64,000 nucleotides of DNA from Macrostomum hystrix (Eukaryota; Animalia; Platyhelminthes). Below the pieces are notes generated by a model that saw nothing but the letters and a program-made list of their open reading frames with translations, did not search any database and was not told the DNA's origin. The position numbers were made by a program, and so were the translations under genes. Location of the stretch: assembly GCA_950097015.1 (NCBI GenBank), contig CATNEN010000005.1, forward strand, positions 5,146,001 through 5,210,000. Direction: 5' to 3'. Positions 9,801 to 38,480 of this stretch are shown here, one piece after another. The first letter of the stretch is position 1. Each line of letters starts with the position of its first letter.

Positions 9801-9902
9801 TCAAAAGTGAATGAAAAGTTTCCCATTTATTTAAAAAAAATGAAAAAAAATTTTTGCATCCATCACTACTGACTGAAAATTAGTTTAAAAGTATATTAGA
9901 TT

Positions 9903-9977
9903 GACGCAGTGAAGAGTCGAACCAAGGACACTTCGCCTATTCCTATTCCTAGTGCCTACACATCGGCTACTCTGACT
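9903..9977 (-). promoter_or_regulatory. tRNA-like Pol III internal promoter (A/B box) in the Helitron 5' subterminal region; copies at 13324-13398, 16746-16820 and 37955-38026
   Basis: Minus strand GTCAGAGTAGCCGATGTGTAGGCAC...GGTTCGACTC, followed by a TTTT run; the autonomous copy has GTCGGAATAGCCGATGTGTAGG...GGGTTCGATTC. Confidence 0.55.
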
Positions 9978-10555
9978 GTTGGATTGTGGATGCAAAAATT
10001 AGACTTATAAAATGAATTCTGAAAGTTCTGGCTTTGTACAAATCGAGTACATTTTAGTTGTGTACATTCATTTCTAATTTGTGTTTAGATTGTGCAGGCT
10101 TCTAACTCAGTCAGCTAGGGGGTGTTGCGCAAGTTGACGATGCAATTCCAATTCAGAGGCAGTCAGTGAAATTCTGACAAAGGGTGAGAAAAGCTATGAT
10201 GCAATCTATTTAAAAATAAATTCGCACTGACTGTTTCGCCAGTGGGGTTGACGCAGTGAAATTCTTATCAGTGTACTCAATTTAACAAAACTGGCCCTGA
10301 TGCAATCATTAAAATTGGCAGTGGTATGCACGTTGACAAAACTGGCTCTGATGTAATGCATTAAAAATCCTATCTAAAACAGTTTTTCGAATATTTAATC
10401 CCCTTAGCAATAAAGTTAGGCTTAATAAAAATACGTGTAAAATTGTCCCCATATTTGGCATCTTTTGGTGAAGAAATGGTGAAAATCGGTTGAGCCGTTC
10501 GGGAGAAAATCAATTACAAGCAACCAAGCAAGATTTTCATTTTTAGTATATAAGA

Positions 10556-13500: not shown

Positions 13501-13976
13501 TGTGTTTAGATTGTGCAGGCTTCTAACTCAGTCAGCTAGGGGGTGTTGCGCAAGTTGACGATGCAATTCCAATTCAGAGGCAGTCAGTGAAATTCTGACA
13601 AAGGGTGAGAAAAGCTATGATGCAATCTATTTAAAAATAAATTCGCACTGACTGTTTCGCCAGTGGGGTTGACGCAGTGAAATTCTTATCAGTGTACTCA
13701 ATTTAACAAAACTGGCCCTGATGCAATCATTAAAATTGGCAGTGGTATGCACGTTGACAAAACTGGCTCTGATGTAATGCATTAAAAATCCTATCTAAAA
13801 CAGTTTTTCGAATATTTAATCCCCTTAGCAATAAAGTTAGGCTTAATAAAAATACGTGTAAAATTGTCCCCATATTTGGCATCTTTTGGTGAAGAAATGG
13901 TGAAAATCGGTTGAGCCGTTCGGGAGAAAATCAATTACAAGCAACCAAGCAAGATTTTCATTTTTAGTATATAAGA
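10556..13976 (-). mobile_element. Non-autonomous Helitron unit 2 (3421 bp)
   Basis: Same termini as unit 1 with a longer 18-bp array. Confidence 0.92.
10651..12600 (+). repeat. 18-bp minisatellite array, unit 2
   Basis: Same unit; interrupted by a ~65-bp unique segment near 11745-11810. Confidence 0.97.
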
Positions 13977-16900: not shown

Positions 16901-17398
16901 TTGTGTACATTCATTTCTAATTTGTGTTTAGATTGTGCAGGCTTCTAACTCAGTCAGCTAGGGGGTGTTGCGCAAGTTGACGATGCAATTCCAATTCAGA
17001 GGCAGTCAGTGAAATTCTGACAAAGGGTGAGAAAAGCTATGATGCAATCTATTTAAAAATAAATTCGCACTGACTGTTTCGCCAGTGGGGTTGACGCAGT
17101 GAAATTCTTATCAGTGTACTCAATTTAACAAAACTGGCCCTGATGCAATCATTAAAATTGGCAGTGGTATGCACGTTGACAAAACTGGCTCTGATGTAAT
17201 GCATTAAAAATCCTATCTAAAACAGTTTTTCGAATATTTAATCCCCTTAGCAATAAAGTTAGGCTTAATAAAAATACGTGTAAAATTGTCCCCATATTTG
17301 GCATCTTTTGGTGAAGAAATGGTGAAAATCGGTTGAGCCGTTCGGGAGAAAATCAATTACAAGCAACCAAGCAAGATTTTCATTTTTAGTATATAAGA
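13977..17398 (-). mobile_element. Non-autonomous Helitron unit 3 (3422 bp), near-identical to unit 2
   Basis: ORF track repeats exactly at +3421; the only visible difference is one extra A in a homopolymer near 16685. Confidence 0.92.
14072..16022 (+). repeat. 18-bp minisatellite array, unit 3
   Basis: Copy of the unit 2 array. Confidence 0.97.
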
Positions 17399-17493
17399 CT
17401 AGCAAGTTTTGCCCCCCTTCGGGGAGCAGAAATACTTTTAATTCGTCTAGTATATACTTTTTAGCAGCTGAATTTACAGCTTTTTAAAGCTAC

Positions 17494-20400
17494 AATGAAC
17501 CCCCAGTTGACAATGATCCCCCGTTGATGATGATCTCCCAGTTGATGATGATCCCCCAGTTGACAATGATCCCCCAGTTGACAATGAACCCCCAGTTGAC
17601 AATAATCCCCCAGTTGACAATGAACTCCCAGTTGACAATGATCCCCCAGTTGACAATGATCCCACAGTTGACAATAATCCCCCATTTGATGATGATCCCC
17701 CCGTTGATGATGATCTCCCAGTTGACAATGATCCCACAGTTGACAATGAACCCCCAGTTGACATTGATCCCCCAGTTGATGATGATCCCCCAGTTGACAA
17801 CGATCCCCCTGTTGACAATGATCCCCCAGTTGACAATGAACCCCCAGTTGACAACGATCCCCCAGTTGACAATGATCCCCCAGTTGACAATGATCCCCCA
17901 GTTGACAATGATCCCCCAGTTGACAAAGATCCTCCAGTTCACAATGATCCCCCAGTTGATAATGACTCCCCATTGATGATGATCCCCAGTTAACAATGTT
18001 CCTCCTGTTGACAATGTTCCCCCAATTGACAATGATCCCCCAGTTTATGATGATCACCCAGTTGACAATGAACCCCCAGTTGAAAACGATCCACCAGTTG
18101 ACAATGATCCCCCAGTTGACAATGATCCCCCAGTTGACAATAATCCCCCAGTTGACAATGATCTCCCAGTTGACAATGATCCCCCAGTTGACAATGATCC
18201 CACAGTTGACAATAATCCCCCATTTGATGATGATCCCCCCGTTGATGATGATCTCCCAGTTGACAATGATCCCACAGTTGACAATGAACCCCCAGTTGAC
18301 ATTGATCCCCCAGTTGATGATGACTCCCCATTGATGATGATCCCCAGTTAACAATGTTCCTCCTGTTGACAATGTTCCCCCAATTGACAATGATCCCCCA
18401 GTTTATGATGATCACCCAGTTGACAATGAACCCCCAGTTGAAAACGATCCACCAGTTGACAATGATCCCCCAGTTGACAATGATCCCCCAGTTGACAATG
18501 ATCCCACAGTTGACAATGATCCCCCAGTTGACAAAGATCCCCCAGTTGATGATGATCACCCAGTTGACAATGATCCCCAAGTTGACCAATGGCGAAATCT
18601 GAGTTTGAATCTTGGCTTACCCAGCGTTTGAAAAGAAAAAACAACTGAGCTAGTTATCCCCCAGTTGACCATTACCCCCCAGTTGACAATGATCCCCCAG
18701 TTGACAATGATCCCCCAGTTGACAATGATCCCGCCGGTTGACAATGATCCCACAGTTGACAATGAACCCCCAGTTGATGATGATCTCCCAGTTGATGATG
18801 ATCCCCAGTTGATGATGATCACCCAGTTGACAATGATCCCCAAGTTGACCATGATCCCTCATTTGATGATGATTCCCCAGTTGACAATTATCCCCCAGTT
18901 GACAATGATCCCCCAGTTGACAAAGATCCTCCAGTTCACAATGATCCCCCAGTTGATGATGACTCCCCATTGATGATGATCCCCAGTTAACAATGTTCCT
19001 CCTGTTGACAATGTTCCCCCAATTGACAATGATTCCCCAGTTTATGATGATCACCCAGTTGACAATGAACCCCCAGTTGAAAACGATCTACCAGTTGACA
19101 ATGATCCCCCAGTTGACAATGATCCCCCAGTTGACAATAATCCCCCAGTTGACAATGATCTCCCAGTTGACAATGATCCCCCAGTTGACAATGATCCCAC
19201 AGTTGACAATAATCCCCCATTTGATGATGATCCCCCCGTTGATGATGATCTCCCAGTTGACAATGATCCCACAGTTGACAATGAACCCCCAGTTGACATT
19301 GATCCCCCAGTTGATGATGACTCCCCATTGATGATGATCCCCAGTTAACAATGTTCCTCCTGTTGACAATGTTCCCCCAATTGACAATGATTCCCCAGTT
19401 TATGATGATCACCCAGTTGACAATGAACCCCCAGTTGAAAACGATCTACCAGTTGACAATGATCCCCCAGTTGACAATGATCCCCCAGTTGACAATAATC
19501 CCCCAGTTGACAATGATCTCCCAGTTGACAATGATCCCCCAGTTGACAATGATCCCACAGTTGACAATAATCCCCCATTTGATGATGATCCCCCCGTTGA
19601 TGATGATCTCCCAGTTGACAATGATCCCACAGTTGACAATGAACCCCCAGTTGACATTGATCCCCCAGTTGATGATGATCCCCCAGTTGACAACGATCCC
19701 CCTGTTGACAATGATCCCCCAGTTGACAATGAACCCCCAGTTGACAACGATCCCCCAGTTGACAATGATCCCCCAGTTGACAATGATCCCCCAGTTGACA
19801 ATGATCCCCCAGTTGACAAAGATCCTCCAGTTCACAATGATCCCCCAGTTGATAATGACTCCCCATTGATGATGATCCCCAGTTAACAATGTTCCTCCTG
19901 TTGACAATGTTCCCCCAATTGACAATGATCCCCCAGTTTATGATGATCACCCAGTTGACAATGAACCCCCAGTTGAAAACGATCCACCAGTTGACAATGA
20001 TCCCCCAGTTGACAATGATCCCCCAGTTGACAATAATCCCCCAGTTGACAATGATCTCCCAGTTGACAATGATCCCCCAGTTGACAATGATCCCACAGTT
20101 GACAATAATCCCCCATTTGATGATGATCCCCCCGTTGATGATGATCTCCCAGTTGACAATGATCCCACAGTTGACAATGAACCCCCAGTTGACATTGATC
20201 CCCCAGTTGATGATGACTCCCCATTGATGATGATCCCCAGTTAACAATGTTCCTCCTGTTGACAATGTTCCCCCAATTGACAATGATCCCCCAGTTTATG
20301 ATGATCACCCAGTTGACAATGAACCCCCAGTTGAAAACGATCCACCAGTTGACAATGATCCCCCAGTTGACAATGATCCCCCAGTTGACAATGATCCCAC

Positions 20401-21800
20401 AGTTGACAATGATCCCCCAGTTGACAAAGATCCCCCAGTTGATGATGATCACCCAGTTGACAATGATCCCCAAGTTGACCAATGGCGAAATCTGAGTTTG
20501 AATCTTGGCTTACCCAGCGTTTGAAAAGAAAAAACAACTGAGCTAGTTATCCCCCAGTTGACCATTACCCCCCAGTTGACAATGATCCCCCAGTTGACAA
20601 TGATCCCCCAGTTGACAATGATCCCGCCGGTTGACAATGATCCCACAGTTGACAATGAACCCCCAGTTGATGATGATCCCCCAGTTGATGATGATCCCCA
20701 GTTGATGATGATCACCCAGTTGACAATGATCCCCAAGTTGACCATGATCCCTCATTTGATGATGATTCCCCAGTTGACAATTATCCCCCAGTTGACAATG
20801 ATCCCCCAGTTGACAAAGATCCTCCAGTTCACAATGATCCCCCAGTTGATGATGACTCCCCATTGATGATGATCCCCAGTTAACAATGTTCCTCCTGTTG
20901 ACAATGTTCCCCCAATTGACAATGATTCCCCAGTTTATGATGATCACCCAGTTGACAATGAACCCCCAGTTGAAAACGATCTACCAGTTGACAATGATCC
21001 CCCAGTTGACAATGATCCCCCAGTTGACAATAATCCCCCAGTTGACAATGATCTCCCAGTTGACAATGATCCCCCAGTTGACAATGATCCCACAGTTGAC
21101 AATAATCCCCCATTTGATGATGATCCCCCCGTTGATGATGATCTCCCAGTTGACAATGATCCCACAGTTGACAATGAACCCCCAGTTGACATTGATCCCC
21201 CAGTTGATGATGATCCCCCAGTTGACAACGATCCCCCTGTTTACAATGATCCCCCAGTTGACAATGAACCCCCAGTTGACAACGATCCCCCAGTTGACAA
21301 TGATCCCCCAGTTGACAATGATCCCCCAGTTGACAATGATCCCCCAGTTGACAATGATCCCCCAGTTGACAAAGATCCCCCAGTTGATGATGATCACCCA
21401 GTTGACAATGATCCCCAAGTTGACCAATGGCGAAATCTGAGTTTGAATCTTGGCTTACCCAGCGTTTGAAAAATCAACGTCAACTGGGGAGTCATCATCA
21501 AAATGGGGATCATGGTAAACTGGGGGATAATCGTCAACTGGGGGATCATGGTAAACTGGGGGATAATTGTCAACTGGGGAATCATCATCAAATGGGGGAT
21601 CATGGTCAACTTGGGGATCATTGTCAACTGGGTGATCATCATCAACTGGGGATCATCATCAACTGGGGGATCATCATCAACTGGGGGTTCATTGTCAACT
21701 GTGGGATCATTGTCAACCGGCGGGATCATTGTCAACTGGGGGCTCATTGTCAACTGGGGGATCATTGTCAACTGGGGGGTAATGGTCAACTGGGGGATAA
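17494..21800. repeat. Expanded 18-bp minisatellite with higher-order repeats and a terminal inverted block (~21477-21800)
   Basis: The marker segment recurs at ~18590, ~20480 and ~21425; after ~21477 the repeats read TGGGGGATCATTGTCAAC (reverse orientation). Confidence 0.95.
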
Positions 21801-22125
21801 CTAGCTGCCCTTCGCTACCCTCTGGGTAGCCTACCTTGAGTTCTTATCAGTGCGTTATCAAAATTGGCTCTGATGCAATCATTAAAATTGGCACTGGAGG
21901 CCTCACTGTGCACAAGCTGAAAACAAGAATGCATTAGAAAAGCCTATTTAAAACTGTTTTTCGAATATTTAATCCCCTTGGCAATGGAATTAAGCTTAAT
22001 AAAAATACGTGTACCGATTCCGGCCCATTTGTGATCTTTTGGCGAAGGAATTGTGAAAATCGGTTGAGCCGTTCGGGAGCTAGTCGATTGCAAGCAAGCA
22101 AGATTTTCATTTTTAGTATATTAGA
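21801..22125 (-). mobile_element. 325-bp mini-Helitron of a related subfamily, forming the 5' end of unit 4
   Basis: 5' TCTAATATACTAAAAATGAAAATC; its own 3' hairpin GCTACCC-AGA-GGGTAGC (21814-21830), 9 nt, then CTAG (21801-21804) followed by T. Confidence 0.75.
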
Positions 22126-22937
22126 CTAGCAAGTTTTGCCCCCCTTCGGGGAGCAGAAATAATTAATATTCGTCTAATATATACCTTTTAGCAGGAGTAC
22201 TTTAAGTGTCTTTCTTAAGCTTAAGGTTAAAATATGAATTTTTGGAGATCGTTAATAACGCATTTTAGGTAAAACAAAACTATCAACTTTTTACAGTTTT
22301 TTAGTTTAGAGCTCTGTATATGTCAACGTATTTGATAAAAATTATCTTATTTATTTTATTCATAAAACTGTTAAGAGCACTTTTTTAGTTGTTACTTAAA
22401 ATAAATCAAATGTTATTCCAAGAAATTGCGACTTTCCGAGAAATTACTTGCTTTATTCCGATTTTCTTGTTGCTTGTATTGCTCATGTCGTCATGTGTAC
22501 TACAGTTTTATACACATCCCGAGAAATTTTTTACTTTCTTCATTTGTAAGTGAATTTCTTAGCCCTGCTCATCGTACTAACTGCGACTGCAATGTTCCGA
22601 ACAATAAGTAGCTCAGCATTGCAACTATTGCCCTTGATTGAGGCAATAAATGACTTAAAGAGTCAGTTCAATGCAGCTATCTCATTGTGAATGGACTTTG
22701 CAAAAGCAACTGGAGCTACATCCTTCGACCTTTGGTTTGACACTTTTAATAAAGCTAACATAGGCTATATATAGGCATGATATATGATATATATTATCAT
22801 GCTAAATTCCCCCTTTCTTTTCTAGTCGCACTCCTCAGCAGACTTCTCTTTTCTTATATGCCTCATACACATTGTCAAATCTTATTTTGAATCAAATCCT
22901 ATATGACATAAAAGTCTATTTCAAATTAGATCCCATT

Positions 22938-24050
22938 TTGATAGTTCAAAATGGTTAGCTAATATCAATGGCTAATTAAGTATCAATGGATCAATTTCTA
23001 ATCTCCTTTCTTTTTCTTAATGATTCCAGTTGTGATCAGATCCTATTTCTCATCTGACCTCTTTTCTTAGTAATCCATTTTGTATCATTCTTCATTATAA
23101 ATGCATGCCTGACAATTTATCTTTTAAAATAGAATAAGGCAGGTACCAGGTGTGCAGATTCATGAATCATGGGACTGGTCTTTGTCCACTGAAACATTTT
23201 TTGTATTTCTTCAATTGCAAAACACATTGAAAACAACAAAACAACAACAATTGAGTGAGCATCTGACAAATTTATTATTATACAAATACATATCATTATG
23301 ACGTTATAAGAAAACAAACTCCAAATGTAGAGAATTCAGTTCAATGAAAAAAGAAAGAATTGCATTGCACCTAAAAATATTACCCACAAACAGTAAACAT
23401 GATGAACTTGCAGAAGGCTCCGCCAACAAGACAGTATCATTGCACAGGTCATTGCATTTGACTGCAAGAATAATGGTGTCAATCCTACTGCTTGTTGGCT
23501 TGCTTTACTCTGCACTGCTGGTCAGAGGCATTCACTGGGGCAAGTTAAGTTCACGCACTCAACGTCACACAAAAAGCTTAGCTATCACAAGAGTCTCTAG
23601 GTTTGCTGAAGCTGCTTCAAACCTCTCATGGCTGCATACCCTCAGTTTTAGAGTGGAAGAACCTCTGAATCGTGATAAGCAGCGAACACGTTATTTCAAC
23701 CACAATCTCAAGGCCCATTGATATGCAGCCAACCTGCTATATATTCACCTAATATTTACCTACATTAATTTCACTATTACTTATTAACTTTCATGGCACA
23801 ACTAAATTGGGATCCGATTGTATCCGATCCTATTCTGGTTTGCCTTGATCTCAATCTAGTTATGCGAGGATCTCAATTTAGTTATGCAATAATCCCATTT
23901 TAGTTACGCCAAAAGATCCCAATTTAGCTAAGCAATGATCTCAGTTCTATTATGCAATGAACCCAATTTAGCTAAGCAATGATCTCAGTTCTGTTACGCC
24001 ACAAACAAAATTTAGCTAAGCAATGATCTCAGTTCTGTTATGCTATGAAC
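22938..24050. repeat. ~1.1-kb internal direct duplication, second copy at 27267-28350
   Basis: Offset 4329; ORFs 23117-23317/27446-27646 and 23344-23721/27673-28050 are near-identical. Confidence 0.95.
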
Positions 24051-24335
24051 CCAATTTAGCTAAGCAAAAAAATGATCTCACTTCTATTATGGAATAAACC
24101 CAATTTAGCTAAGCAAAATGATCTCACTTCTGTTATGCCACAAACACAATTTAGCTAAGCAATGATCTCAGTTCTATTATGCCACAAACACAATTTAGCT
24201 AAGCAATGATCTCAGTTCTATTATGCCACAAACACAATTTAGCTAAGCAATGATCTCCGTTCTGTTATGCCACAAACACAATTTAGCTAAGCAATGATCT
24301 CAGTTCTGTTATGCAATGAACCCAATTTAGCTAAT
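23920..24335 (+). repeat. 44-bp minisatellite (CAATTTAGCTAAGCAATGATCTCAGTTCTATTATGCCACAAACA)n; second array ~28260-28840
   Basis: Period 44 (e.g. 24147 to 24191). Confidence 0.9.
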
Positions 24336-24563
24336 CATTTTGCTCAGCTAATCCCTGATCCCAATTCCATTATGATCCCATCTAATTTGAATTTATTAGG
24401 TGAATAAAGCAGGATTTGCCTGATATGTCTCATCGGGCCATTTTATACATATCAGGAGAAACTGCTTGTGATCACTATTAAACACAGATAATGCGACACT
24501 GGCAGACAAACATGTACACAAGCAATACTCACGTTAATTGCATCTTCATTAGTCTTTCAAGTC

Positions 24564-25956
24564 TTACTCGTCCATGTAATCATGTGATGGTCCAGGCTTC
24601 TCGGACACATTGGGCGCCTTAGGGGTTGACATAGCCGGTATCTGCTGACTCCTGTAGATTTGATCTCGAGAAAAAGTCACCTGTGAAAGGAAATTTATAT
24701 ATACCTAATTAATTTTTTTTATTGTTTTTTAAATGCATAAACGTAATCTTTAGAGACAAAAGGCCTCATCGAACCAGTTAATAATGAATCTAAGCAGTCA
24801 ATCACCTAATGCTTCTTTATAGTAGGTTCTCTGACATCATGTTACTATTTAACCCACACGAAATAAAATCAACTTACCTCTTTGTCCCCAAATCGCACTC
24901 TAATTCTTCGCACCTCATCGAATTGGTTGAACATTCGCTCTGGGTACTGCAATACCATTTCGTCGTCACGGATAGCATTTTTCTCCCGCTGGGAGCTTTG
25001 CGTCACGCGTAGCTCCTCGAAGCACTGTTGGCTAGAAACCGCATCCTTGTACCACTGGGTAATGTCGGAGACATCAGCAGAGTCTTCTGGCCAATGCTGA
25101 ATTTCCGCTTTCGAACATCCGAGACTGATTGTCTGAGAATATTCCTGGACTTGAGCACCATGAATCGCTAGAACGTCGCCCACAGACCAGTCATTCACTT
25201 GGGCAGTAGAGCTGGACCAAAATGTGCACGACACGGAGGACCCAGACTGATCAACAAGCGTCACTTTCGCCAGGTTGACAAGTTTTCCGGAACCGGTTTT
25301 AACTTCCGTTGGTTTCTGGACAGCAGAAATCGTGCCATAGACGTTAACATTCCTGAGATATGTGAGGCAAAGGGTGAATTTACAAGAATGCATTAACTCA
25401 TTCACTAAGCAACTTCACTGACTGATTTAAATAAGTTTTCCTAGAAATAATTGGCTAACCTAACAATTAGTGCGAATAAATATTCCAAATCCTTTCCATT
25501 TATTTTTAACAATTGCAACAAGTTAACTTACATTTTCATTTCACAGTCCGAAATCTCTTTTATCTTCTTATAGCCCGGTGCACGTCGAGTGACGGTCTCG
25601 AGGGTCCTCACAATGGTTCCACTTTGGTCAATTGAAACTGTTAGCTCGTGCTCATTGTCCGTAGTGCTGTACCTGGGATCCGCCTTCTTCACCCAGCCGC
25701 CGGATATGCGGACGGCGACGCCCTCACGACACACCTCCAGGAAAGGCTTAAGATCCTTTCCGAACACGCTTACACGTATATCGCCGGTGTCGTCACAGAG
25801 GATAAAGGAAAACACTTGGCCTGGTCCTCTTTTGCCTTCAAAGTCCTTGATTTTGGACAGCCTCATTACGAGGCCAACGATTGCAGCGTGCATCAGGCCC
25901 GGAAGCAGAGCAGAGATACACGCTTTGCTTTTCTTGGCTCCTTCGGTTGACTCCAT
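24564..25956 (-). CDS. RPA70-like ssDNA-binding protein with two OB folds (DBD-A/DBD-B-like), 338 aa, 3 exons: 25956-25532, 25352-24878, 24680-24564
   Basis: GT-AG introns join in frame (425+475+117 nt). OB1: GQVFSFILCDDTGDIRVSVFG...RISGGWVKKADPRYSTTDNEHELTV. OB2: VNVYG...VTLVDQSGSSVSCTFW...VLAIHGAQVQEY...ITQWY. Both match the RPA1 DBD-A/B pattern from memory. Confidence 0.88.
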
Positions 25957-26777
25957 ATTGCTCGATTGATAGTTGTCAAAAATATGGATTATAAAAATTT
26001 CACTGATAAGGTCTTTACGGCTTGTGGTTTGATAGTTTTAGCATCAAGGCCAATTGTGCCAGTTTATATTTCAGCATTTCGGACAACCCCAACTGTGATG
26101 ACTCATGCCAATAGAGGGTGCCATGTAAAGATCAATAATTAGATCTGGCTAACCAATCAGAGAGAGTTTTGTTCTAAAATTTCTAATCCACCCACTGGGC
26201 TACTTGTTGTGGATTGCCTTAGCTTTTACGTTCTTTCTTTATGTACAGTGTGGGGTGTCAAAGTCGAGTGTGGTGCGACTTGTTATGTAATCTGTTTTCG
26301 ACACACTTCAATAATAGGACACCAAAAACATCTTATATCTACAGTGTAATTGGGGTGCAAGTGCGGCGTGTGGCTATAATGAGGCTAAAAATAGAGGGTT
26401 TCAAGTCAGCCAATAGCAGTTAGGTGCATTCAATAAAAGTTATTTCATTAAAGTGCCACCGCAAGCCCCAACCTAGCGAGACTTTTCAGTAATCATCACA
26501 AACAGCTAAAGCCTCATGAAGCTCACCAATGAAGCCTTACCCAATTTTAACTGGGGTTGGGGTGGCCCTAAGCTGGAATTCATTTTTGCCCAAGCTGAAA
26601 CGGGCTTTAAAAAATGAATTGAGTTTCGATTGGTTTACAAACCAATCTCGCTAATCCTTGGCTTGGCTTGAGTGAGCGCATATAAACCAGAGTGAGCGTA
26701 CGTCAGGTCGCAAACCATTAAGAATTCTATTCAACCAATCTATTCTACAACGTCTACAACTCGAATTCGTCTACAAT

Positions 26778-27062
26778 ATGAAAATCAACCAGTTTTACAG
26801 CAGCGGTGGCAACGGTGGCAACAGCCGGCGACGCCGAGGTGGGGGCCAGCGGCCTCTATCGTGCTTTCTTTGCGCGGGGCCACACACAGTGGCCCGCTGC
26901 CCTGCCGTCGCACAAGTGCGGCAGCAGCAGCAGCAGCAGCAGCCGCAGCAGCAGCTACTACTTGGAATTGGAACGAGGCTGCAGCAGCAGCTGCAGCAGC
27001 AGCAGCAGCAGCTGCAGCAGCAGCAGCAGCCGCAGCAGCAGCAGCAGCAGCCTAACAAATAA
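26778..27062 (+). CDS. 94-aa Arg/Gly-rich, CX2CX3HX4C zinc-knuckle, polyQ micro-protein
   Basis: MKINQFYSSGGNGGNSRRRRGGGQRPLSCFLCAGPHTVARC followed by polyQ; TATAAA at 26681; AATAAA overlaps the stop; flanked by 36-bp direct repeats. Confidence 0.55.
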   Translation: MKINQFYSSGGNGGNSRRRRGGGQRPLSCFLCAGPHTVARCPAVAQVRQQQQQQQPQQQLLLGIGTRLQQQLQQQQQQLQQQQQPQQQQQQPNK

Positions 27063-28839
27063 ATCCCAATCCTAAATTCTATTCTACAACGTCTACAATT
27101 CGAATTCGTCTACATTGTGCAAATTGTGCAAATTCCCCAATTGTGCAAATAAATTGAATCGAATTAATATTCACTGGAGAAATAATTGTTTCGTGTTGCT
27201 TTTCCTTATTTCCTACTGAAAATGAGAAACTTAATTGACACAGCTCATTGCAGTTCAAAATTCAAATTGATAGTTCAAAATGGTTAGCTAATATCAATGG
27301 CTAATTAAGTATCAATGGATCAATTTCTAATCTCCTTTCTTTTTCTTAATGATTCCAGTTGTGATCAGATCCTATTTCTCATCTGACCTCTTTTCTTAGT
27401 AATCCATTTTGTATCATTCTTCATTATAAATGCATGCCTGACAATTTATCTTTTAAAATAGAATAAGGCAGGTACCAGGTGTGCAGATTCATGAATCATG
27501 GGACTGGTCTTTGTCCACTGAAACATTTTTTGTATTTCTTCAATTGCAAAACACATTGAAAACAACAAAACAACAACAATTGAGTGAGCATCTGACAAAT
27601 TTATTATTATACAAATACATATCATTATGACGTTATAAGAAAACAAACTCCAAATGTAGAGAATTCAGTTCAATGAAAAAAGAAAAAATTGCATTGCACC
27701 TAAAAATATTACCCACAAACAGTAAACATGATGAACTTGCAGAAGGCTCCGCCAACAAGACAGTATCATTGCACAGTTCATTGCATTTGACTGCAAGAAT
27801 AATGGTGTCAATCCTACTGCTTGTTGGCTTGCTTTACTCTGCACTGCTGGTCAGAGGCATTCACTGGGGCAAGTTAAGTTCACGCACTCAACGTCACACA
27901 AAAAGCTTAGCTATCACAAGAGTCTCTAGGTTTGCTGAAGCTGCTTCAAACCTCTCATGGCTGCATACCCTCAGTTTTAGAGTGGAAGAACCTCTGAATC
28001 GTGATAAGCAGCGAACACGTTATTTCAACCACAATCTCAAGGCCCATTGATATGCAGCCAACCTGCTATATATTCACCTAATATTTACCTACATTAATTT
28101 CACTATTACTTATTAACTTTCATGGCACAACTAAATTGGGATCCGATTGTATCCGATCCTATTCTGGTTTGCCTTGATCTCAATCTAGTTATGCAATGAT
28201 CTCAATCTAGTTATGCGAGGATCTCAATTTAGTTATGCAATAAACCCATTTTAGTTACACCAAAAGATCCCAATTTAGCTAAGCAATGATCTCAGTTCTG
28301 TTACGCCACAAACAAAATTTAGCTAAGCAATGATCTCAGTTCTGTTATGCTATGAACCCAATTTAGCTATTGGGTTGGGAACCCAATTGGCTATTGGGAA
28401 CCCAATCCGATCCTATTCTGGTTTGCCTTGATCCCAACTCGTAGCAGAAAATTTTCATTACCTTACGGACGCCCCTCTTACTAATCATAATTCTGGTAAA
28501 CAATGAATCCAATTTTCCATTCTTCAATGATCCCATTCGTATCATGCCATGAGCCCAATTTCATTATGCGATAATTCCAATTCTGGTTTGCTATGATCCC
28601 AATTTAGTATGCAAGGATCCCAACTTAGTTATGCCAAATGATCCCAATTACGCTAAGCCATGATCTTAGTTCTGTTATGCAATGAACCCAATTAGGCTAA
28701 GCAATGATCTCACTTCTGTTATGCCACAAACACAATTTAGCTAAGCAATGATCTCACTTCTGTTATGCCACAAACACAATTTAGCTAAGCAATGATCTCA
28801 CTTCTGTTACGCCACAAACACAATTTAGCTAAGCAATGA

Positions 28840-30522
28840 TTTAGGATTGATATATAAGATTCTGTGAATTTAGGATTGGGATCTAAGAGATTCTATGAAT
28901 TTAGGATTGGAATCTAAGAGATTCTATGAATTTAGGATTGGGATCTAAGAGATTCTGTGAATTTAGGATTGGGATCTAAGAGATTCAATGAATTTAGGAT
29001 TGGGATCTAAGAGATTCTATGAATTTAGGATTGGGATCTAAGAGATTCTATGAATTTAGGATTGGGATCTAAGAGATTCTATGAATTTAGCATTGGGATC
29101 TAAGAGATTCTATGAATTTAGGATTGGGATCTAAGAGATTCTGTGAATTTATGATTGGGATCTAAGAGATTTTGTGAATTTAGGATTGGGATTTAAGAGA
29201 TTCAATGAATTTAGGATTGGGATCTATGAGATTAGGATTGGGATCTAAGAGATTCAATGAATTGAGGATTGGGATATAAGAGATTCTATGAATTTAGGAT
29301 TGGGATCTAAGAGATTCTGTGAATTTAGGATTGGGATCTCAGAGGTTCTATGAATTTAGGATTGGGATCTAAGAGGTTCTATGAATTTAGGATTGGGATC
29401 TAAGAGATTCTGTGAATTTAGCATTGGGATCTAAGAGATTCTATGAATTTATGATTGGGATCTAAGAGATTCTATGAATTTAGGATTGGGATATAAGAGA
29501 TTCTGTGAATTTAGGATTGGGATCTAAGAGATTCAATGAATTTAGGATTGGGATCTAAGAGATTCTGTGAATTTAGGATTGGGATCTAAGAGATTCTGTG
29601 AATTTAGGATTGGGATCTAAGAGATTCTATGAATTTAGGATTGGGATATAAGAGATTCTATGAATTTAGGATTGGGATCTAAAAGATTCTATGAATTTAG
29701 GATTGGGATCTAAGAGATTCTGTGAATTTAGGATTGGGATATAAGAGATTCTATGAATTTAGGATTGGGATATAAGAGATTCTATGAATTTAGGATTGGG
29801 ATATATCTCTTATATCTCTTGTGAATTTAGAATTGGGATCTAAGAGATTCTGTGAATTTAGGATTGGGATATAAGAGATTCTATGAATTTAGGATTGGGA
29901 TCTAAGAGATTCTATGAATTTAGGATTGGGATATAAGAGATTCTATGAATTTAGCATTGGGATCTAAGAGATTCTATGAATTTAGGATTGGGATATAAGA
30001 GATTCTATGAATTTAGGATTGGGATCTAAGAGATTCTGTGAATTTAGGATTGGGATCTAAGAGATTCTATGAATTTAGCATTGGGATCTAAGAGATTCTA
30101 TGAATTTAGGATTGGGATATAAGAGATTCTATGAATTTAGGATTGGGATCTAAGAGATTCTGTGAATTTAGGATTGGGATCTAAGAGATTCTATGAATTT
30201 AGGATCGGGATCTAAGAGATTCTATGAATTTAGGATTGGGATCTAAGAGATTCTGTGAATTTAGGATTGGGATCCAAGAGATTCTGTGAATTTAGGATTG
30301 GGATCTAAGAGATTCTATGAATTAAGCATTGGGATCTAAGAGATTCTATGAATTTAGGATTGGGATCTAAGAGATTCTGTGAATTTAGGATTGGGATCTA
30401 AGAGATTCTGTGAATTTAGGATTGGGATCTAAGAGATTTTGTGAATTTAGGATTGGGATCTAAGAGATTCTGTGAATTTAGGATTGGGATCTAAGAGATT
30501 CTGTGAATTTAGGATTGGGATC
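28840..30522 (+). repeat. 31-bp minisatellite (GAATTTAGGATTGGGATCTAAGAGATTCT(A/G)T)n, ~54 copies
   Basis: Period 31 (e.g. 28866 to 28897). Confidence 0.97.
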
Positions 30523-30784
30523 TGTTATGCTCAGTTCTGTTATGCCACAAACACAATTTAGCTAATCATTTTGCCTAGGTAATCCCTTATCTCAATTCCA
30601 TTATGATCCCATCTAATTTGAATTTATTAGGTGAATAAAGCAGGATTTGCCTGATATGTCTCAGCGGGCCATTTACATATCAGGATAAACTACTTGTGAT
30701 CACTATTAAACACAGATACCAATGCGACACTCACATACAAAAATGACACAAGTAATACTCACTTCAATGACGCCTGGAAATCGC

Positions 30785-33700
30785 CTAATCTCCAGTGAGC
30801 ACTTCTGGATACACCACGTTCCTGGTCTTGGTTCCGGAAACCCGGACGCGGACATTGGCCGCGTTCTTCGCTCGTGACAGCGCCGTGTACAGCTGACCAT
30901 GAGTGAAGCAACCGACAGCCAGGTCAACGCCAACGGTCTCCAGAGACTGGCCTTGTGCTTTGTGTATTGTAAGGCAGAAGCTCGACTTCACAGGAAACTG
31001 CAGCCGCTTGAAACTCACTGGTAGATCCGCATTGTTTGGAATCAGCGGAATTCGCGGCAGCAGGATCTCGTCTCCAGTGAACTGACCGGCGGCAATCTTG
31101 CAGCGCAGCACATTATCGCCCATCGTGAGAACGATGAGCCGTGTACCGTTGCACAGCCGCGGCGGGTTGATGTTCCGAAGAAGCACCAGCGGCATGCCCA
31201 CCTTGATCCTGAGCAGATAAGTTGGAAAATTCGGGGCATCCAGCTGGTTTAGCAACTCCGTCGGGAAATGCGTAGCGGCCTCCTCATCAGCCAGGCTGTC
31301 TACAGAGCGATACTCTCGCAGGCAACCCGGGAAAATGCCCAGACACGTCTCGTTGATGGCATCAACAGAGTCGTTGTACGGCGCCAGTATCGCTCGACTT
31401 GCAAAATAGTCGTCCCGCTCCGCTGATTCTTCAAACGACGGGTACACGAACTTGATCAGGTCATTCAGCGGAGCCTCTGCAGAAATCACCATCTCAGCGG
31501 GAAGGGACACCTTCTCCTCAGCATCCTGCTCGATTGTCCCGGTTCCGATCTGTGAAAAGAAAAGCAATAAAAACATGAAACATAATATTCGCAATGATTC
31601 GCGAGATTCGAATGATTTTACACCCCATTCTCACCTGCATAAGTAGCTCCGTGAACTTCTGGTACATCGCTGGCTCGGAGCTGCACAGCAGACGAATGTT
31701 TCTCGTCAAGCGATGTCGCTTGAAAAGTTTCCACAGCGAAGATCTGCAGACACACGCCATGACGCTGTTGGCGCGGGTTCCATTCACTACGACAGGCAGG
31801 AGCTGGCGGAAGTCACCGGAACACACCAGAGTGACTCCTCCAAATGGCTTGTCCTGCTTCCGAACGTCTCGCAGACACCTGTCCACGGATTCCAGATCCT
31901 TTCGATTGGTCATGGAGATCTCGTCCCAGACAATCAGCCGAACTCTACGAAACACTTCCGCTTGCTTGGACTGCGCGCCAACAGCGCAGACATCCTTGTT
32001 GGATCGGAGCAGCCGGACTGGGATCTTGAACCTAGAGTGAAGTTGTCATAGGTAGAATCGATTAGAAACGCGACTCTATAAAATTCAGAAGCATTCCCCT
32101 AATCTAAAAAACTTACGTGGAATGCGCAGTCTGTCCGCCTGGCAGCAGAGTCGCTGCGATTCCAGACGCCGCAACTGCCAGGGCGAGTTCACCGCGGCTG
32201 CGCACAAAGGCCAGCAAAACCTCCAGCAGGAAGGTCTTGCCAGTGCCAGCGGGCGCGTCCAGGAAGTGCAAACCGCCCGAGCCGGCCACAAGATCCGCAG
32301 TCACCGACTCGTACACCGCAATCTGCTCCTCCGTCAGCATTGACAGTCTCGCTTCCCGGATCTCGGCCTGTTCAACCGGGTCGAACTGCATCGGTCCGAC
32401 TTGAGGCGGCACGGAGGCCGCAGGCAAGCCGTACTCGGGCAGGCTGTGACCGCCCATGGAGGTCAGCATGCTCTGCAGCTCGCGCAGCGCCAGGTCGGTG
32501 ATTTCCTCAGCGCTCAGATCTCGGTGGTGAAACCGCAGGTCCTCGCACAGATCCTCGGCGAATGTGCACCACAGATCGCTGCCATCCTCAGGGTTGCCCC
32601 AAATCAGAATGACAGCCAGCAGGTGCCTGAGAGCTCTCGGCATTCGCGACTGGACTGCCTCGGCTAGGCAGCGCCGCCAGTGGTCGTCTCGTTGCAGCAG
32701 ACCCAGGGCCGTGCAAGCAGCCTTGGCGCTGGGACACAGCACTCCGTCCACAGTGTGCAGCGCCTCGAAGCTGGTTGGCCCTCTAACCTGCAGGAGGAGC
32801 ATTCGCATATAAAACAGATCCCCTGCTCTCGGACTCACCGTGTACATTCGGGCAATGTTCGTGTTGTGCACAACACCAGGGTGGCCCTCAACTCTCGAAC
32901 CCTTCTTGGCGCGGCGCCACTCCCTCTCGCTGTGGTGCCACACGAAGTAGGACGGCACCTCGGTGTACACCAGGCCTCTAGCGAATTCATCAGTGCGGCA
33001 CAGCTTGAAGAAAGCCGTCAGCGTCGAATCTCTGGGCGCCCTGGCCTTTGTGCTCGCATTTTGCTCGTTGAAATACACGAGCTGCTCGTTAGACTTGTGC
33101 ACGCACAATCGGATCACAGCCGGAAATCTGTTGTGCACCTGTTGTGTTTTAGTTTAAAAACCAAATTATTATTTTCCCATTCTTTGCTCCTAGCACTGCC
33201 TTGCAAACATCTATGACTTACTTCAAAGCCCAAGATGGTATTCACGGCTTCCATTGGGCCTATGTAGCGCGCCAGCAGATACTCCTTGATCTCATTTCGC
33301 CCCTCCTTCTTGGCTTGAGTCGGAGCCTTGCTAGCTGAACCTTCCTGTCGTTCGCCATCCGCAGCCTGCTCTCCTGGCCCGCTCGGCTTCTTGTTTGCCT
33401 CGAACTTGAACGACGCCATGTCGCCGCCTTTTAGCAAGTACTTGATCACGTACTTGACCGACTTGACGGTGGCACAAACTTCAAAGTTCATGTGGCATTC
33501 GAAAAGGAGCAGCAGGCCCGGGTTGTATGGTACAACCCACCTGTATTTGTGCCAGGAAAAGAATTGCTAATTAATGATTTATGTATTCTAGCAATGGTAA
33601 ATTAAACTTACAGTAAATAAACAATTTAGCAATATAAATAAACTAAACACAAGGCTAAACTAAGTACTTTGCTTTCGTATTAAAGAATCAACCTTTCAAT

Positions 33701-36700
33701 CAAGTCTGAAAAAACACCAACACCTCCTCACTCACCTGTTGTCCATGCGAATGCTGCGGCCTTTGAATAGTTTGTCCACCGTGAATCCGCCCATCTCAGG
33801 GGACAGCCTGCGATACAATGGGTAGCCAGTATCGCTGGTTAGAGTCGCCTGCTGGAACTCCTTCGGGAAGCCCTTGCTGCACTGGCCGTCCACCATGCAC
33901 GGGCAGGCTGGATTTACCACGCCGCAGGGGCCATGGATCATGTGAGTCTTCACCAGCTCGTGCAGCCTCGGCTGCTGCTGTGGGTCCGGGATCTCAGCGG
34001 ACACGATTTTGTCGTAGCGGTCCGGAGTCACTCTCTGTCCACTGACCAGCCAGAGCAGAAAGTGCACATGGGGGAGACCTGTGGAAGACATAAATAAATA
34101 AGTGATTCAAAGCAACGTATGATTGCGAAATCCCTTGCATAAAAATATGGATAGCTAAACCTGGAATGTATAGCAATGCAATCCTTGAACTCAAAAGTCT
34201 GTAATTACAGAAAGAAAATTGAAACCGCAAATCGCTCACTTACCGCGCTTCTGATACTCCAGAGAGCAAACATGTGCGGCCTCCTTTCCAAAGCGCTTCC
34301 TCAGCTCGGCAAGCAGAGCCTTCTTCTTCAGCTCGAAAACGCGCGTGACAATATCCGGCCGGTCCTCAGGTCGCTGTCCAGGTAGCAGCTGTGCGCTGAT
34401 TTCCGTCCACTTAGGGTTGCACGTCGCCGTGACAAACAGGTCCGGCTTGCCAAACTTTTGTACGTAGGTCATGGCGTCTTGCAGTCTCTCCATCAGGTAC
34501 CTTGGCCCGCCAACGAAGCTGGAGGACAGGAATACGTGCGCAGGCTTGCCAACATCAGTCGGATTTGTGTCGGTCGACCTGCCATCAGCAGCGAATAGAG
34601 CGTCTCGCAGACCGCTGTACGTCTCACTGCGCAGGTCGCTCTGATGGGTCCGCAGATAGAGCAGCCTCTCTGACTCAATCTTGGCGCACATATCCACCAG
34701 GTACTGCTGGAACAGCCTCCGTCCGTAGTGCAGCAAGCTGCTCTGGCCAGCTCGCACCATGATTTCGCTGGCATAGTACTTCATCGGCGTCAGCTTGCGG
34801 CCATTGCTCATGCGCAGCTCAGGGTGCCAGCCGTCCTCGCCATGGGGGAACAGCAACACGTACTCCAGTGCATCATACGATCGGTGCGTTTTGCTAATCC
34901 TCTTGTAGCCGCCACCCCGCAGTTGAATGACAACATCTCGGCTAGTTGCTGGCTCATCACCGTCTTCAGGGGCCTCAGTATCCTCAGTGTCCTTAACAAT
35001 GAGGATGCCGACCTCGTTTGCCGTGGGCAAATTGTAGCGCCTGATTTTGAACGGTAGTAACAAATGCTTTTAACAAAACTCTTTACAACGGTAAACATTT
35101 CTGTGTACACAGGCACAAAGCTTTAAAAGACAGGTTTTAAAATGTGTTCGAATCCCTTTTCAGTTATTGTTAGCTCACCGAATGTGTTCCCCAGAAGGCC
35201 TCCGGTCCGGGTGAATCACGATTCGCGCATCCACAAGCTCCGGATCCTCCATGATCCGCTGTGCTGCAGCCTTCAGGCTCCGAACGTAAAGGTTGCACTC
35301 GTGAAGCAACGTCTGTAGCAGCTCATGTAGCTCTGGCTTCACCCTATCGCTCAGACTCTGCTGGCTTTCGAGTTCGCGGTCAGTGAAGTACACCTGCCAG
35401 CCGCGAGGAACAGCAGACGCTTCAGCAAACAGCGGCATAGCAGTGTGGTGCAGCTGACCGCTGATGATGTAGCTGGGATTCCAGCCTGGCACCAACCGCG
35501 GCTTGGCACTCAGCGAGGTCAGGTGCAGCACAGAGTTGTAGCTCCGGATGTTGGTCAGGAACTCTGAGCTCATGCCATGCCGGCCCATGTACAGGTCAGC
35601 CAGCAGCTGTGGCACAGTCCGGGTGGGCAGCTTCACCTTGCCGCCAGCACAGCAGAAATTGCCCGTCTCCATGCGGAACAGCTTGGCACCGCAATGGTTG
35701 CATGCCCAGTCCATTGGCCCGCAGTCATGGGCTGGGGCTTCTGGCCTCGCCATCGTCTCAGGTCTGATAAAAAATGGAATGTATCTCTTAGTAACTGTTA
35801 AATGTAAATGTAACTGTTAATTGTGTGTCAGTTTACCTTGCAGTACCGGGTCCGTCTTCAGCGCGGCCCGCAGTCTCATGTTCCGCCGGCATCGCGCTGG
35901 GGCCCTTGGCCTTTTTGGTCTTCTTGGCAGGAGTTCTGCTTGCTGCCAGGCTTGGGAACTCAGCATCTGTAAAGGCTTGCAAAGGCTCTCGAAGTCTCAG
36001 TGACTCGTAATGTTCATGGCGCAAAAGCACACGCACAATGGCATTAGGAGGGCGCAAATTAGCCCTGAAATATTGCATCACACTACCATTGGCCTGGTAA
36101 ATGACCAGGTCCACATTAAAGCAGCGGCTCAACAAAGAGGCAACTTCATCTGAAACATAAATTCCTGCTTGAAAAGAGGAATTCACGATCTCATCAGCAC
36201 TTTCAGGTGCAATAAGGCCATCTGCAACCAGCTGTGGCATGAGTTCTGCAACACGGCAAGACAAGTCCTGCCGCAGGGAGGCTGCGTCAGTTTCCAGCGG
36301 GGTTCCACGCAGCTGATCACACACAGCATAAAAAAAGCAATTGCCATCACCAACAATGGGGATTACCTGCAACTGCTCAAAGGGTACAATAGATTCTGTA
36401 CCTTGCTGCTGGGTGTCCGACCTAAGGGGCAATGGGTGAACGTAAGCATTCATCTCTTGGAGTCTGAACGTTGGCTTTTTAAGACAATTCATTTCTCAAA
36501 AATCGTTGTTCGCTTAATTTATACAGAATAAAATGGATACTACAAATTATCCCCTTCAAGGCAATTCAGAAAAAAAGAAAAATAAAGACTTGTTATAAAA
36601 CGGCCATAAAACTCACCTAGAAACCACAGCTCCACGGCGACGAATGCGATCGGCTTCCAATCGGGCAGCCTGCTCTGCCTCAGTCTCAGCATGTCTGCGC

Positions 36701-36957
36701 TGAGCATTCCGCTGCCGCTGTTCTTCCAATCGGTCAGCCTGCTCTGCCTCAGTCTCAGCATGTCTGCGCTGAGCATCCCGCTGCCGCTGTTCTTCCAGTC
36801 GGGCAGCCCACTCTGTCTCAGTCTCAGCATGTCTGCGCTGAGCATTCCGCTGCCGCTGTTCTTCCAGTCGGGCAGCCCGCTCTGCCTCGGATTCTGCCTG
36901 TCGCCGTCGCTTGGCATCGCGGCTCTTCTTTAAACTGCTGGCGCCGCGTCGAACCAT
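30785..36957 (-). CDS. Helitron RepHel, ~1717 aa, 9 exons: 36957-36617, 36421-35837, 35763-35179, 35040-34244, 34078-33736, 33540-33222, 33138-32117, 32031-31635, 31549-30785
   Basis: All 8 introns are GT-AG and phase-compatible; exon total is 5154 nt. Domains: 23-aa STPR-like repeats, OTU (GDGNCFFYA...HEHY), Zn finger (CNHC...CCAGGKV), Rep motifs FVTATCNPKW / EYQKRGLPHVH / KYVIKYLLKG, and Pif1 motifs DAPAGTGKT, WDEISM, GDFRQLLPV, TIHKAQGQS, HGQLYTALSR. Confidence 0.95.
36660..36900 (-). repeat. 69-bp coding tandem repeat (ETEAEQAARLEEQRQRNAQRRHA), STPR-like, ~3.5 copies
   Basis: 23-aa periodicity in RepHel exon 1. Confidence 0.85.
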
Positions 36958-37349
36958 GATTGAGAAATGAGAAGCAAAATGAAATAGTTGAGAAAGAATG
37001 ATAGGGTTTGAAAGATGAAACTTTGTGAATTCGGATGTCTGAAGAATCAGATAAGGCGCCCTTATAGCCAAACTAATTTGCAGGCTTTTTATCATCCAGT
37101 GGGCTGAATCGGAGCTTATCTTAAGACGCAGGGTAAAAACTGAAAAATCAATAAAGAAAACAGGGGTCTAAATCTAAAAAACCTATGATTTGGGGTGTGG
37201 GCTCCCCAGGCCCGTGCGTCCACATTCCGGGGCAGAGGGCTCACAATGTACACTGGTCTGCGCCAGCCAGAGAGAAAAGCTGTGATGTAATCTATTTATA
37301 AATTCGCACTGACTGTCTCGCCAGTGGGGTTGACACAGTTATGTACATT

Positions 37350-37870
37350 TGACACACTGATTCAAACTCGGGTTTTGCCATGATTAAGACTCGGGTTTTG
37401 CCATGATTAAGACTCGGTTTTTGCCATAATTAAGACTCGGGCTTTGCCATGATTCAAACGATGGTTTAGCCATGATGGTTTATTTATGATTCAAACTCTA
37501 TGATTCAGACTCTGGTTTAGCCATGATTCAGACTCTGGTTTAGCCATGATTCAGACTCTGGTTTTGCCATGATTCAGACGCTGTTTTAGCCATGATTCAA
37601 AGTCTGGTTTAAGCATGATTCAAACTCTTGTTTAGCCATGATTCAAACGATGGCTTAGCCATGATTCAAACGATGGTTTAGCCATGATTTTAAACGATGG
37701 TTTAGCCATGATTCAAACTCTGGTTTAGCCATGATTCAAACGATGGTTTAGCCATGATTGAAACTCTGGTTTAGCCATGATTCAAACTCTGGTTTAGCCA
37801 TGATTTAAACGCTGGTTTAGCCATGATTTAAACGCTGGTTTAGCCATGATTCAAACTCAGATTTGCTATG
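37350..37870 (+). repeat. 23-bp minisatellite in the autonomous Helitron, upstream of RepHel
   Basis: GCCATGATTCA(A/G)AC(T/G)(C/A)TGGTTTA units. Confidence 0.93.
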
Positions 37871-38480
37871 ATTTATGATATTTTATTTACAAAATGAAAA
37901 AATAAATTAAAATAATCTTCAATCACTACTGGCTGAAAATTAGTCTAAATGATTTGACGCAGTGCAGAATCGAACCCTAGCCTAGCCTAACCTATTCCTA
38001 GTGCCTACACATCGGCTATTCCGACTGTTGGTTAGTGCGTGCAAAATATAGCCTTATAAAATGAATTCTCAAAGTTCTGGCTTTGTACAATGAAGTAAGA
38101 AAATAGAGTACACTCAGTCTCGCGGTTGGTTGTGTACATTTATTTCCAATTTGTCTCCAGAGTGCAGGCTTCAAATTCAATCAGCTAGGGGTTGTTGCGC
38201 AATTTGACGATGCAATTCTAATTCAGTGGCAGTGAGTAAAATTCTCAATAGGCCACGATGTTTGACCTTTGAAAAGTCATGTTTTTCGAATATTTAATCC
38301 CTTTAGAAATAAAGTTAAGCTTAATAAAAATACGTGTATAATTGTCCCTATATTTGGCATCTTTTGGTGAAGAAATTGTGAAAATCGGTTGAGCCGTTCG
38401 GGAGAAAATCAATTACAACCAAGCAACCATTTCATTTTTAGTATAGTGGAAGAAGAAGATATATAAGATTATTTTCCCAC

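Follow-up and report, generated by a model that had tools for sequence, protein, structure and literature searches.

A probably autonomous Helitron of the flatworm Macrostomum hystrix carries a mini-RPA gene and a conserved micro-protein gene beside its transposase gene

Helraiser-type animal Helitrons encode a single RepHel open reading frame (ORF) (PMC4067079). A Helitron on the minus strand of a 64-kb stretch of DNA from Macrostomum hystrix (this whole stretch is called the window here) differs from that type in that it adds an OTU-like domain, a mini-RPA gene that is predicted to be spliced, a knuckle micro-protein gene and three satellites. The question that this locus raises is whether such parts belong to one transposon and travel with it. 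We consider it probable that the element is a young, structurally intact, autonomous HLE1 Helitron that moves as one TC...CTAG unit with three genes. The original prediction for this DNA had described a canonical Helitron in which an initiator-helicase, an OTU-like domain, an RPA-like binder and a knuckle protein form one unit, and this arrangement is found again in independent insertions as well as in another RepHel family (family 2).

All of the long coding segments at 30.7-37.1 kb lie on the minus strand, and the element thus reads from high to low coordinates. Its extent and ends are as follows.

22126..38450, minus strand: whole autonomous Helitron, 16,325 bp; ends placed by homology to seven other copies and by a fuzzy terminus search
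38449..38450, minus strand: 5' terminal TC; the element begins TCCACTATAC, a start common to copies c2, c3, c5, c8, c9 and c10
38451..38468, minus strand: 18-nt stub 5' of the true start, made up of the 9-nt start of another Helitron family and three TCT triplets
22126..22153, minus strand: 3' terminus, with a hairpin (22139-22153), a 9-nt spacer and CTAG (22129-22126)

The similarity of the window to the seven other copies begins at position 38450, and the 5' end of copy c4 is a TCTAATAT variant with an A directly before it. Intact TC and hairpin-CTAG termini had been predicted, and the 3' end was placed exactly, whereas the 5' end, set at 38468, had taken in the 18-nt stub. The 9-mer of this stub is identical to the starts of further Helitron units at 17398, 13976 and 10555. 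A stub in front of an autonomous Helitron is consistent with insertion of new copies just within the start of one already resident. The 3' hairpin is GC-rich, with a 6-bp stem that includes one G-T pair and a GAA loop, and it stands 9 nt before the CTAG; the 3' terminus does not vary among any of the copies, and that of contig NIVC01004209.1 is almost the same. No terminal inverted repeat was found in the 16,325-bp element, and Rfam gave no family in the whole window.

The element has the features of an HLE1 Helitron, namely TC and CTRR ends, a 3' hairpin, insertion between A and T and the RepHel motifs, and it carries no HLE2 marks, given that no exon had a Pfam match to Exo_endo_phos or DUF6570 and that terminal inverted repeats were absent. 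Helentrons, in contrast, are marked by subterminal inverted repeats and T|T insertion and often encode an AP endonuclease, none of which is present here. The TC start, the hairpin followed by CTAG, the A|T insertion and a RepHel with HUH, two-tyrosine and Pif1-like parts are shared with Helibat/Helraiser (PDB 7lcc), to which the exons align over residues 318-1107 with E values down to 1e-46. Helraiser was the sole PDB match at E <= 0.001 for the Rep and helicase exons.

Evidence that the genes move together comes from the other copies in the genome (220 Mb in 42 contigs). The RepHel family of the window has at least 10 copies at 94-100% identity, and family 2 has at least 12 at about 75-84% nucleotide identity. 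We examined a set of eight full-length copies (the window and seven others); the family-2 elements and the diverged RPA/knuckle pairs were assessed from search tables of matches. Identity between the window copy and c2 is 98.9-99.6%, and the lengths of the copies range from 16.3 to 20.9 kb, a difference due largely to satellite length and internal rearrangement. Termini were searched for with two queries, 34 nt of 3' terminus with up to 6 errors allowed and the 13-nt 5' core with 1 mismatch. Exactly one 5' end and one 3' end were found around RepHel and RPA in the window, c2, c3, c4, c5, c8 and c9, and this fuzzy search for both ends found no internal terminus in those seven copies. A genome-wide search for copies with all three genes had been proposed with the original prediction; among the copies examined here, at least six insertions at different sites have common outer ends and enclose all three genes. 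The flanking DNA differs between copies. An A precedes the 5' end in four copies at other sites (c3, c4, c8 and c9), and two of these, c3 and c8, read A|TC...CTAG|T, with a non-Helitron T after the 3' end and unrelated flanks. The flanks of the copies indicate that insertion is between A and T without a target-site duplication. Given that each copy has one 5' end and one 3' end and that the flanks differ, the three-gene unit has been inserted repeatedly as a whole. All three genes are intact in four of the eight full-length copies, and the other four have a broken gene.

The transposase gene, RepHel, is modeled as nine open segments joined by eight frame-compatible predicted introns of the form GT[A/G]AG...AG.

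36617..36957, minus strand: exon 1, with the probable ATG at 36957 and basic 23-aa repeats
35837..36463, minus strand: exon 2, OTU-like cysteine protease domain; an alternative acceptor gives a start at 36421
35179..35763, minus strand: exon 3, N-terminal Cys-rich region; the in-frame ATG 35753 is an alternative start
34244..35040, minus strand: exon 4, Rep; Pfam Helitron_like_N, E=1.6e-45; Helraiser 318-589, E=2.6e-45
33736..34078, minus strand: exon 5, Rep with the HUH motif (HVH); Helraiser 591-684, E=7.5e-30
33222..33540, minus strand: exon 6, Rep two-tyrosine motif YxxxY; Helraiser 698-743, E=7.8e-13
32117..33138, minus strand: exon 7, linker, then the beginning of the Pif1-like helicase with Walker A; Pfam PIF1; Helraiser 777-1107, E=2.8e-46
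31635..32031, minus strand: exon 8, PIF1 core with Walker B; Pfam PIF1, E=1.5e-32
30785..31549, minus strand: exon 9, Pif1_2B_dom and UvrD_C_2 (Pfam), helicase C terminus; stop at 30785

Searches were run exon by exon, and the continuity of the frame was established by coordinate arithmetic. All eight ORF ends fall on donors of the GT[A/G]AG type, and in each case an AG acceptor in a compatible frame follows 73-195 nt further on. The motifs HVH, YxxxY, GTGKT (Walker A) and DE (Walker B) can be read in the translations. The segments tile Helraiser without gaps and the eight introns are compatible in frame, and the uninterrupted nine-exon RepHel that had been predicted is thus borne out as a model. 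Exons 2-9 are free of stops and frameshifts in five of the eight copies (window, c2, c3, c5 and c8). RepHel is under purifying selection: between sub-lineages, the synonymous divergence (pS) of exon 4 is 0.08-0.09 compared to a non-synonymous divergence (pN) of 0.007-0.010, the values for exon 9 are 0.072-0.077 and 0.005-0.007, and synonymous change in these two exons is about 10 times the non-synonymous. The remaining RepHel exons of c3, c4, c8 and c9 differ from the window by 0-1%, compared to about 8% at synonymous sites for exons 4 and 9, and this mosaic of divergence along the gene points to recombination between lineages. Modules seem to have been exchanged between Helitron lineages. The start of RepHel is probably ATG 36957 rather than 37095, given that an indel of 1 bp is found at 37064 in c3 and c8; upstream of 36957, the residues do not look like coding sequence. 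The Cys-rich exon 3 had no Pfam match at E up to 10.

Downstream of RepHel lies the mini-RPA gene, which is modeled as three exons with two predicted introns and a product of 337 aa.

25532..25956, minus strand: exon 1, OB fold corresponding to RPA70 DBD-A; human RPA70 176-283, E=4e-8; Pfam OB fold, 7.5e-9
24878..25352, minus strand: exon 2, OB fold corresponding to RPA70 DBD-B; Pfam REPA_OB_2, 4.7e-10; PDB 1jmc 142-217
24564..24680, minus strand: exon 3, 38-aa tail and stop

The mini-RPA consists of DBD-A and DBD-B, the two OB folds with which RPA70 binds single-stranded DNA at high affinity, and is a derivative of RPA70, not an orthologue. No DBD-F or DBD-C was found, and Pfam gave no Rep_fac-A_C match there or in its homologue P0002. 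Without these domains, the protein would be unable to form the RPA trimer, and it presumably binds single-stranded DNA (ssDNA) alone. P0002 (370 aa; 62% identical to exon 1) was found by an exhaustive protein search and is encoded on a contig of GCA_002269645.1, which we take to be an assembly of Macrostomum lignano. Exon 1 aligns to residues 7-143 of P0002, exon 2 to residues 146-302 (68% identical) and exon 3 from residue 303 onward. Given that the exon borders align residue for residue, both predicted RPA junctions match the gene model of P0002, and the in-frame, three-exon gene with two OB folds was predicted correctly. Exon 3 had no Pfam match at E up to 10. The mini-RPA gene, too, is under selection. 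When sub-lineages are compared, exons 1 and 2 are free of indels and the only one in exon 3 is a 1-bp deletion in the broken copy c10, against about 55 indel positions in the introns and flanks of the gene. Among c8, c9, L015 and L017, exon 3 has 7 synonymous and 3 non-synonymous changes and no indels.

The RPA gene stands downstream of RepHel in at least eight copies. The genome has 56 matches to DBD-A, which fall into identity classes between 100% and 30%, and 47 of the 56 have no stops. DBD-A genes that are 50% identical lie downstream of family-2 RepHels. One RepHel copy (C1:8284584-8291293) is 99% identical and is followed by an RPA type that is 69% identical. The best 150 protein matches, except for the few closest, are proteins of 200-1100 aa with one to five OB stretches. 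In the public protein collection, P0001, a giant multi-OB-fold protein of 4022 aa, has 26 separate stretches that match the DBD-A exon (E=1e-90).

The third gene encodes the knuckle micro-protein.

26778..27062, plus strand: micro-protein gene, 94 aa, with an MK..Q N terminus, an RGG box, CX2CX3HX4C and a polyglutamine (polyQ) tail

This gene is antisense to RepHel and RPA and stands head-to-head with the RPA gene, with the two ATGs 822 bp apart. Residues 1-51 have 39 matches in the genome, with identities of 43-100%, and 37 of the 39 matches have no stops. When coordinates were compared by hand, 36 of these matches lay 0.6-7.5 kb from an RPA-like exon, 31 of them head-to-head, and family-2 elements carry the micro-protein between RepHel and RPA. 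In three diverged variants, the start MK-[IF]-[NT]-Q, the RGG box and C-x2-C-x3-H-x4-C are conserved, and a polyQ tail of variable length is closely followed by the stop. The pN/pS ratio was 0.34-0.47 over 50 codons (Fisher p of 2e-7, 0.006 and 0.015), with synonymous sites near saturation. Judged from these comparisons, the micro-protein gene is conserved and under purifying selection. The knuckle itself, CX2CX3HX4C in all variants, is one residue short of the canonical CX2CX4HX4C. This spacing, together with the lack of a Pfam match, makes zinc binding putative, and the zinc-knuckle micro-protein that had been predicted thus stands as a conserved gene under selection and less firmly as a zinc knuckle. 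The closest ESM-Atlas neighbors, clusters of zf-CCHC proteins, score 0.79-0.82 and are a lead only. A 47-nt direct repeat (91% identical; 26739-26785 and 27078-27124) flanks the knuckle ORF and covers its start codon, which suggests that part of this small gene was duplicated in tandem.

A related arrangement was seen in contig NIVC01004209.1 of GCA_002269645.1 (locus L040; 6412, 20792-20798 and 8590-9082), a contig of another species whose Helitron ends and CTAG|TC joints are almost those of our element. The RPA homologue that it carries, a mini-RPA that is 62% identical, runs antisense to the closest RepHel fragment. Head-to-head with this homologue, 1-1.4 kb upstream, are a PY-rich/polyQ ORF and a canonical CX2CX4HX4C knuckle, after which come RS repeats; we estimate the chance expectation for such knuckle motifs in the locus at about 0.06. 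This locus is a lead that the pairing of knuckle and RPA may be older than Macrostomum hystrix.

Exon 2 of RepHel is likely an OTU domain, as judged by similarity. Its six best PDB matches in a phmmer search are all OTU proteases (OTUD3, E=0.0018; nairovirus OTUs, 0.0027-0.16), and its DGNC cysteine motif and HY histidine motif align to OTUD3 and the viral OTUs. The exon has no stops or frameshifts in six copies. The fusion of this domain to RepHel is predicted. In exon 1, a 69-bp repeat (36654-36902) encodes three basic 23-aa repeats with the period of STPR, and in this region pN was not below pS.

The genes are interspersed with repeats.

37315..37925, minus strand: 23-bp satellite of the 5' region; its copy number differs between copies of the element
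28700..30650, no strand assigned: 31-bp satellite between RepHel and the accessory module
27267..28369, no strand assigned: internal direct repeat, copy 1, flanking the accessory module
22938..24062, no strand assigned: internal direct repeat, copy 2, continuing into the 3' region

The two copies of the 1.1-kb direct repeat are 100% identical over the reported 300 nt, and the RPA and knuckle module lies between them. A 125-aa plus-strand ORF within the repeat (23344-23721 and 27673-28050) had no Pfam match. A 45-nt motif found 3' of the RepHel stop (30674-30718) occurs again 3' of the RPA gene (24446-24490).

Downstream of the element, at 8381-22125, a train of four more Helitron units of about 4.7, 3.4, 3.4 and 2.2 kb follows head-to-tail, with exact CTAG|TC joints at 22126, 17399, 13977 and 10556. 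The 3' ends of these units are at 17399, 13977, 10556 and 8381, and a non-Helitron T follows the CTAG at 8381. An 18-bp satellite within the train units has several open frames.

Several results weigh against reading the element as an autonomous Helitron with three genes of the kinds named above. Its internal organization varies between copies, in the satellites, in the 1.1-kb direct repeat around the accessory module and in swapped RPA types, and the module may therefore be reshuffled by recombination and not faithfully inherited. For exon 2, the Pfam OTU match falls below threshold (E=0.12; 13 versus 23 bits), and the single-sequence AlphaFold model of this exon is poor (pLDDT 38). The 23-aa repeats had no Pfam STPR match at E up to 10, and the knuckle had no Pfam match at the same limit. 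No relative of micro-protein residues 1-52 was found in the public protein collection, although this was a word-based search whose negative outcome says little, and the single-sequence AlphaFold model of the micro-protein is also poor (pLDDT 57). All of the introns, the fusion of OTU to RepHel and expression of the micro-protein are predictions from sequence.

We considered whether RPA and knuckle could instead be the genes of a second, non-autonomous Helitron placed head-to-tail after one that has RepHel only, in which case the three-gene element would be an artifact. The train of four units with exact CTAG|TC joints directly downstream in the window would fit such an arrangement, as would the 1.1-kb direct repeat on either side of the accessory module, the 5'-type 23-bp satellite just upstream of the RPA gene in c8 and c9, the degenerate 3' end between a truncated RepHel and RPA in c10, and the RPA and knuckle pairs that are also found away from RepHel matches. 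However, no terminus lies between RepHel and RPA in the seven copies searched, the outer ends of six insertions with different flanks enclose both genes, and family 2 has the same gene order, so we regard this explanation as very unlikely; a past fusion of two units is possible as the origin of the element. An even smaller chance is given to the proposal that the micro-protein ORF does not encode a protein but is a by-product of GC-rich sequence and a CAG repeat. A polyQ tail that is a plain CAG/CAA tract open in several frames would be expected of such a by-product, and the missing Pfam match and public homologue, the non-canonical spacing and the poor structure model agree with it. Against it, protein-level matches persist at 43-73% amino-acid identity where DNA similarity is gone, the start, the knuckle residues and the position of the stop are conserved in three variants, the pN/pS ratios are low (p down to 2e-7), and the gene keeps a fixed position and orientation relative to the RPA gene. 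Noise from the CAG tract was rejected on the 39 matches, the conserved variants and the pN/pS.

Two other alternatives are unlikely but carry more weight. The OTU exons could be a separate upstream gene, with RepHel starting at ATG 35753 and OTU as a fourth, unfused protein. This ATG sits 10 nt past the predicted acceptor, family 2 does not conserve the tail of the OTU exon, and the HELIANO paper (PMC11417382) places 17 of its 20 extra domains in ORFs separate from the transposase, in a passage that does not state to which group OTU belongs. The end of the OTU ORF nevertheless coincides exactly with an AAG|GTAAAC donor, and 73 nt on there is a strong acceptor, rich in pyrimidines, in a compatible frame. 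The 80 nt from stop to ATG leave little room for a promoter. A separate gene is rather improbable in our view, though still a serious contender. The family could also be no longer mobile, its copies being recent relics that owe their similarity to gene conversion or segmental duplication. The mosaic divergence of RepHel, which points to recombination between lineages, is in line with this, as is the broken gene in four of the eight copies. On the other side stand the different flanks at each site with their clean A|TC and CTAG|T joints, the four copies with all three genes intact, and the purifying selection on the coding regions, which acts only on elements that still replicate. We consider an immobile family unlikely, and the three-gene Helitron may be active at present.

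How might such an autonomous three-gene Helitron work? Following what is established for Helitrons and HUH enzymes, we propose that the HUH/two-tyrosine nuclease would nick at the 5' TC and join at the ends, while the Pif1-like helicase would unwind in the 5'-3' direction and peel off one strand. The mini-RPA would coat the displaced strand or circle without RPA32 or RPA14, and the 3' hairpin and CTAG would signal termination; trains such as the one in the window would arise when a stop is missed or when a copy lands on the start of a resident one. More speculatively, the OTU domain, a putative deubiquitinase, could shield RepHel or replication factors from ubiquitin-dependent control, and the RGG/knuckle/polyQ protein could chaperone, condense or scaffold the single-strand intermediate, a role that is likewise speculative. 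DNA synthesis and ligation would be supplied by host enzymes. The element has no polymerase, ligase or clamp gene and would thus still need host replication, and the "self-contained replisome" of the original prediction does not hold. We tentatively suggest that the knuckle/mini-RPA pair could be a dedicated ssDNA-handling module of Macrostomum Helitrons, a new accessory class needed for efficient transposition and a cassette moving between families, although we doubt this more than we believe it. In such a module, the knuckle protein would chaperone or condense the RPA-coated strand or recognize the terminal hairpin.

Plant Helitrons with RPA-like genes were reportedly described by Kapitonov and Jurka in 2001. 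RPA in plant Helitrons, and OTU together with RPA in Helentrons, are on record (Thomas et al. 2014, PMC4067079). The plant Helitrons (rice Mothra family, PMC4683698) share with the present element a canonical structure and an RPA70-derived gene downstream of RepHel. RPA-only "semi-autonomous" relatives exist among them, and their RPAs form a clade confined to flowering plants (PMC4683698). In contrast to the plant RPAs, the protein described here has DBD-A and DBD-B only, is 337 aa long, belongs to an animal host and is paired with a knuckle gene. A closer likeness in cargo is found in the mite Helentron-Mo-1A (HLE2), which has an OTU protease and a mini-RPA with DBD-A and DBD-B, 358 aa (PMC4067079). 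Among HLE1 Helitrons, the HELIANO 2024 paper (PMC11417382) places RPA downstream and OTU upstream of RepHel, the same relative positions as in our element, and describes STPR repeats as almost exclusive to HLE1. That text mentions neither a flatworm nor, among its 20 recurrent domains, a zinc knuckle or a CCHC domain. The element had been thought not previously described; given that HELIANO reports both OTU and RPA in HLE1 (PMC11417382) and that both are known from Helentrons (PMC4067079), this fails for these two parts, and the mini-RPA and OTU are already known kinds of Helitron cargo. It may hold for the knuckle protein and its pairing with RPA in that no publication linking a zinc-knuckle or CCHC gene to Helitrons was found in the literature searched, with Repbase and Dfam outside the scope of this search. 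The micro-protein resembles the zf-CCHC knuckles of retroviral and retrotransposon nucleocapsids in being a small basic protein with C-C-H-C beside an RG-rich stretch, and differs from them in its CX2CX3HX4C spacing without a Pfam match, its free-standing gene in a DNA transposon and its polyQ tail. The new part appears to be the conserved pair of knuckle-protein and RPA genes.

In summary, the picture of what a Helitron is remains unchanged by this element, and its micro-protein gene is a candidate new accessory gene for the Helitron repertoire. To our knowledge, Helitron transposition has been rebuilt experimentally only from the single-protein bat element. Several natural, apparently intact copies are available in a small, tractable flatworm lineage, and given that a two-OB RPA and a micro-protein travel with the transposase under selection, the hypothesis that they act as its helpers is directly testable.

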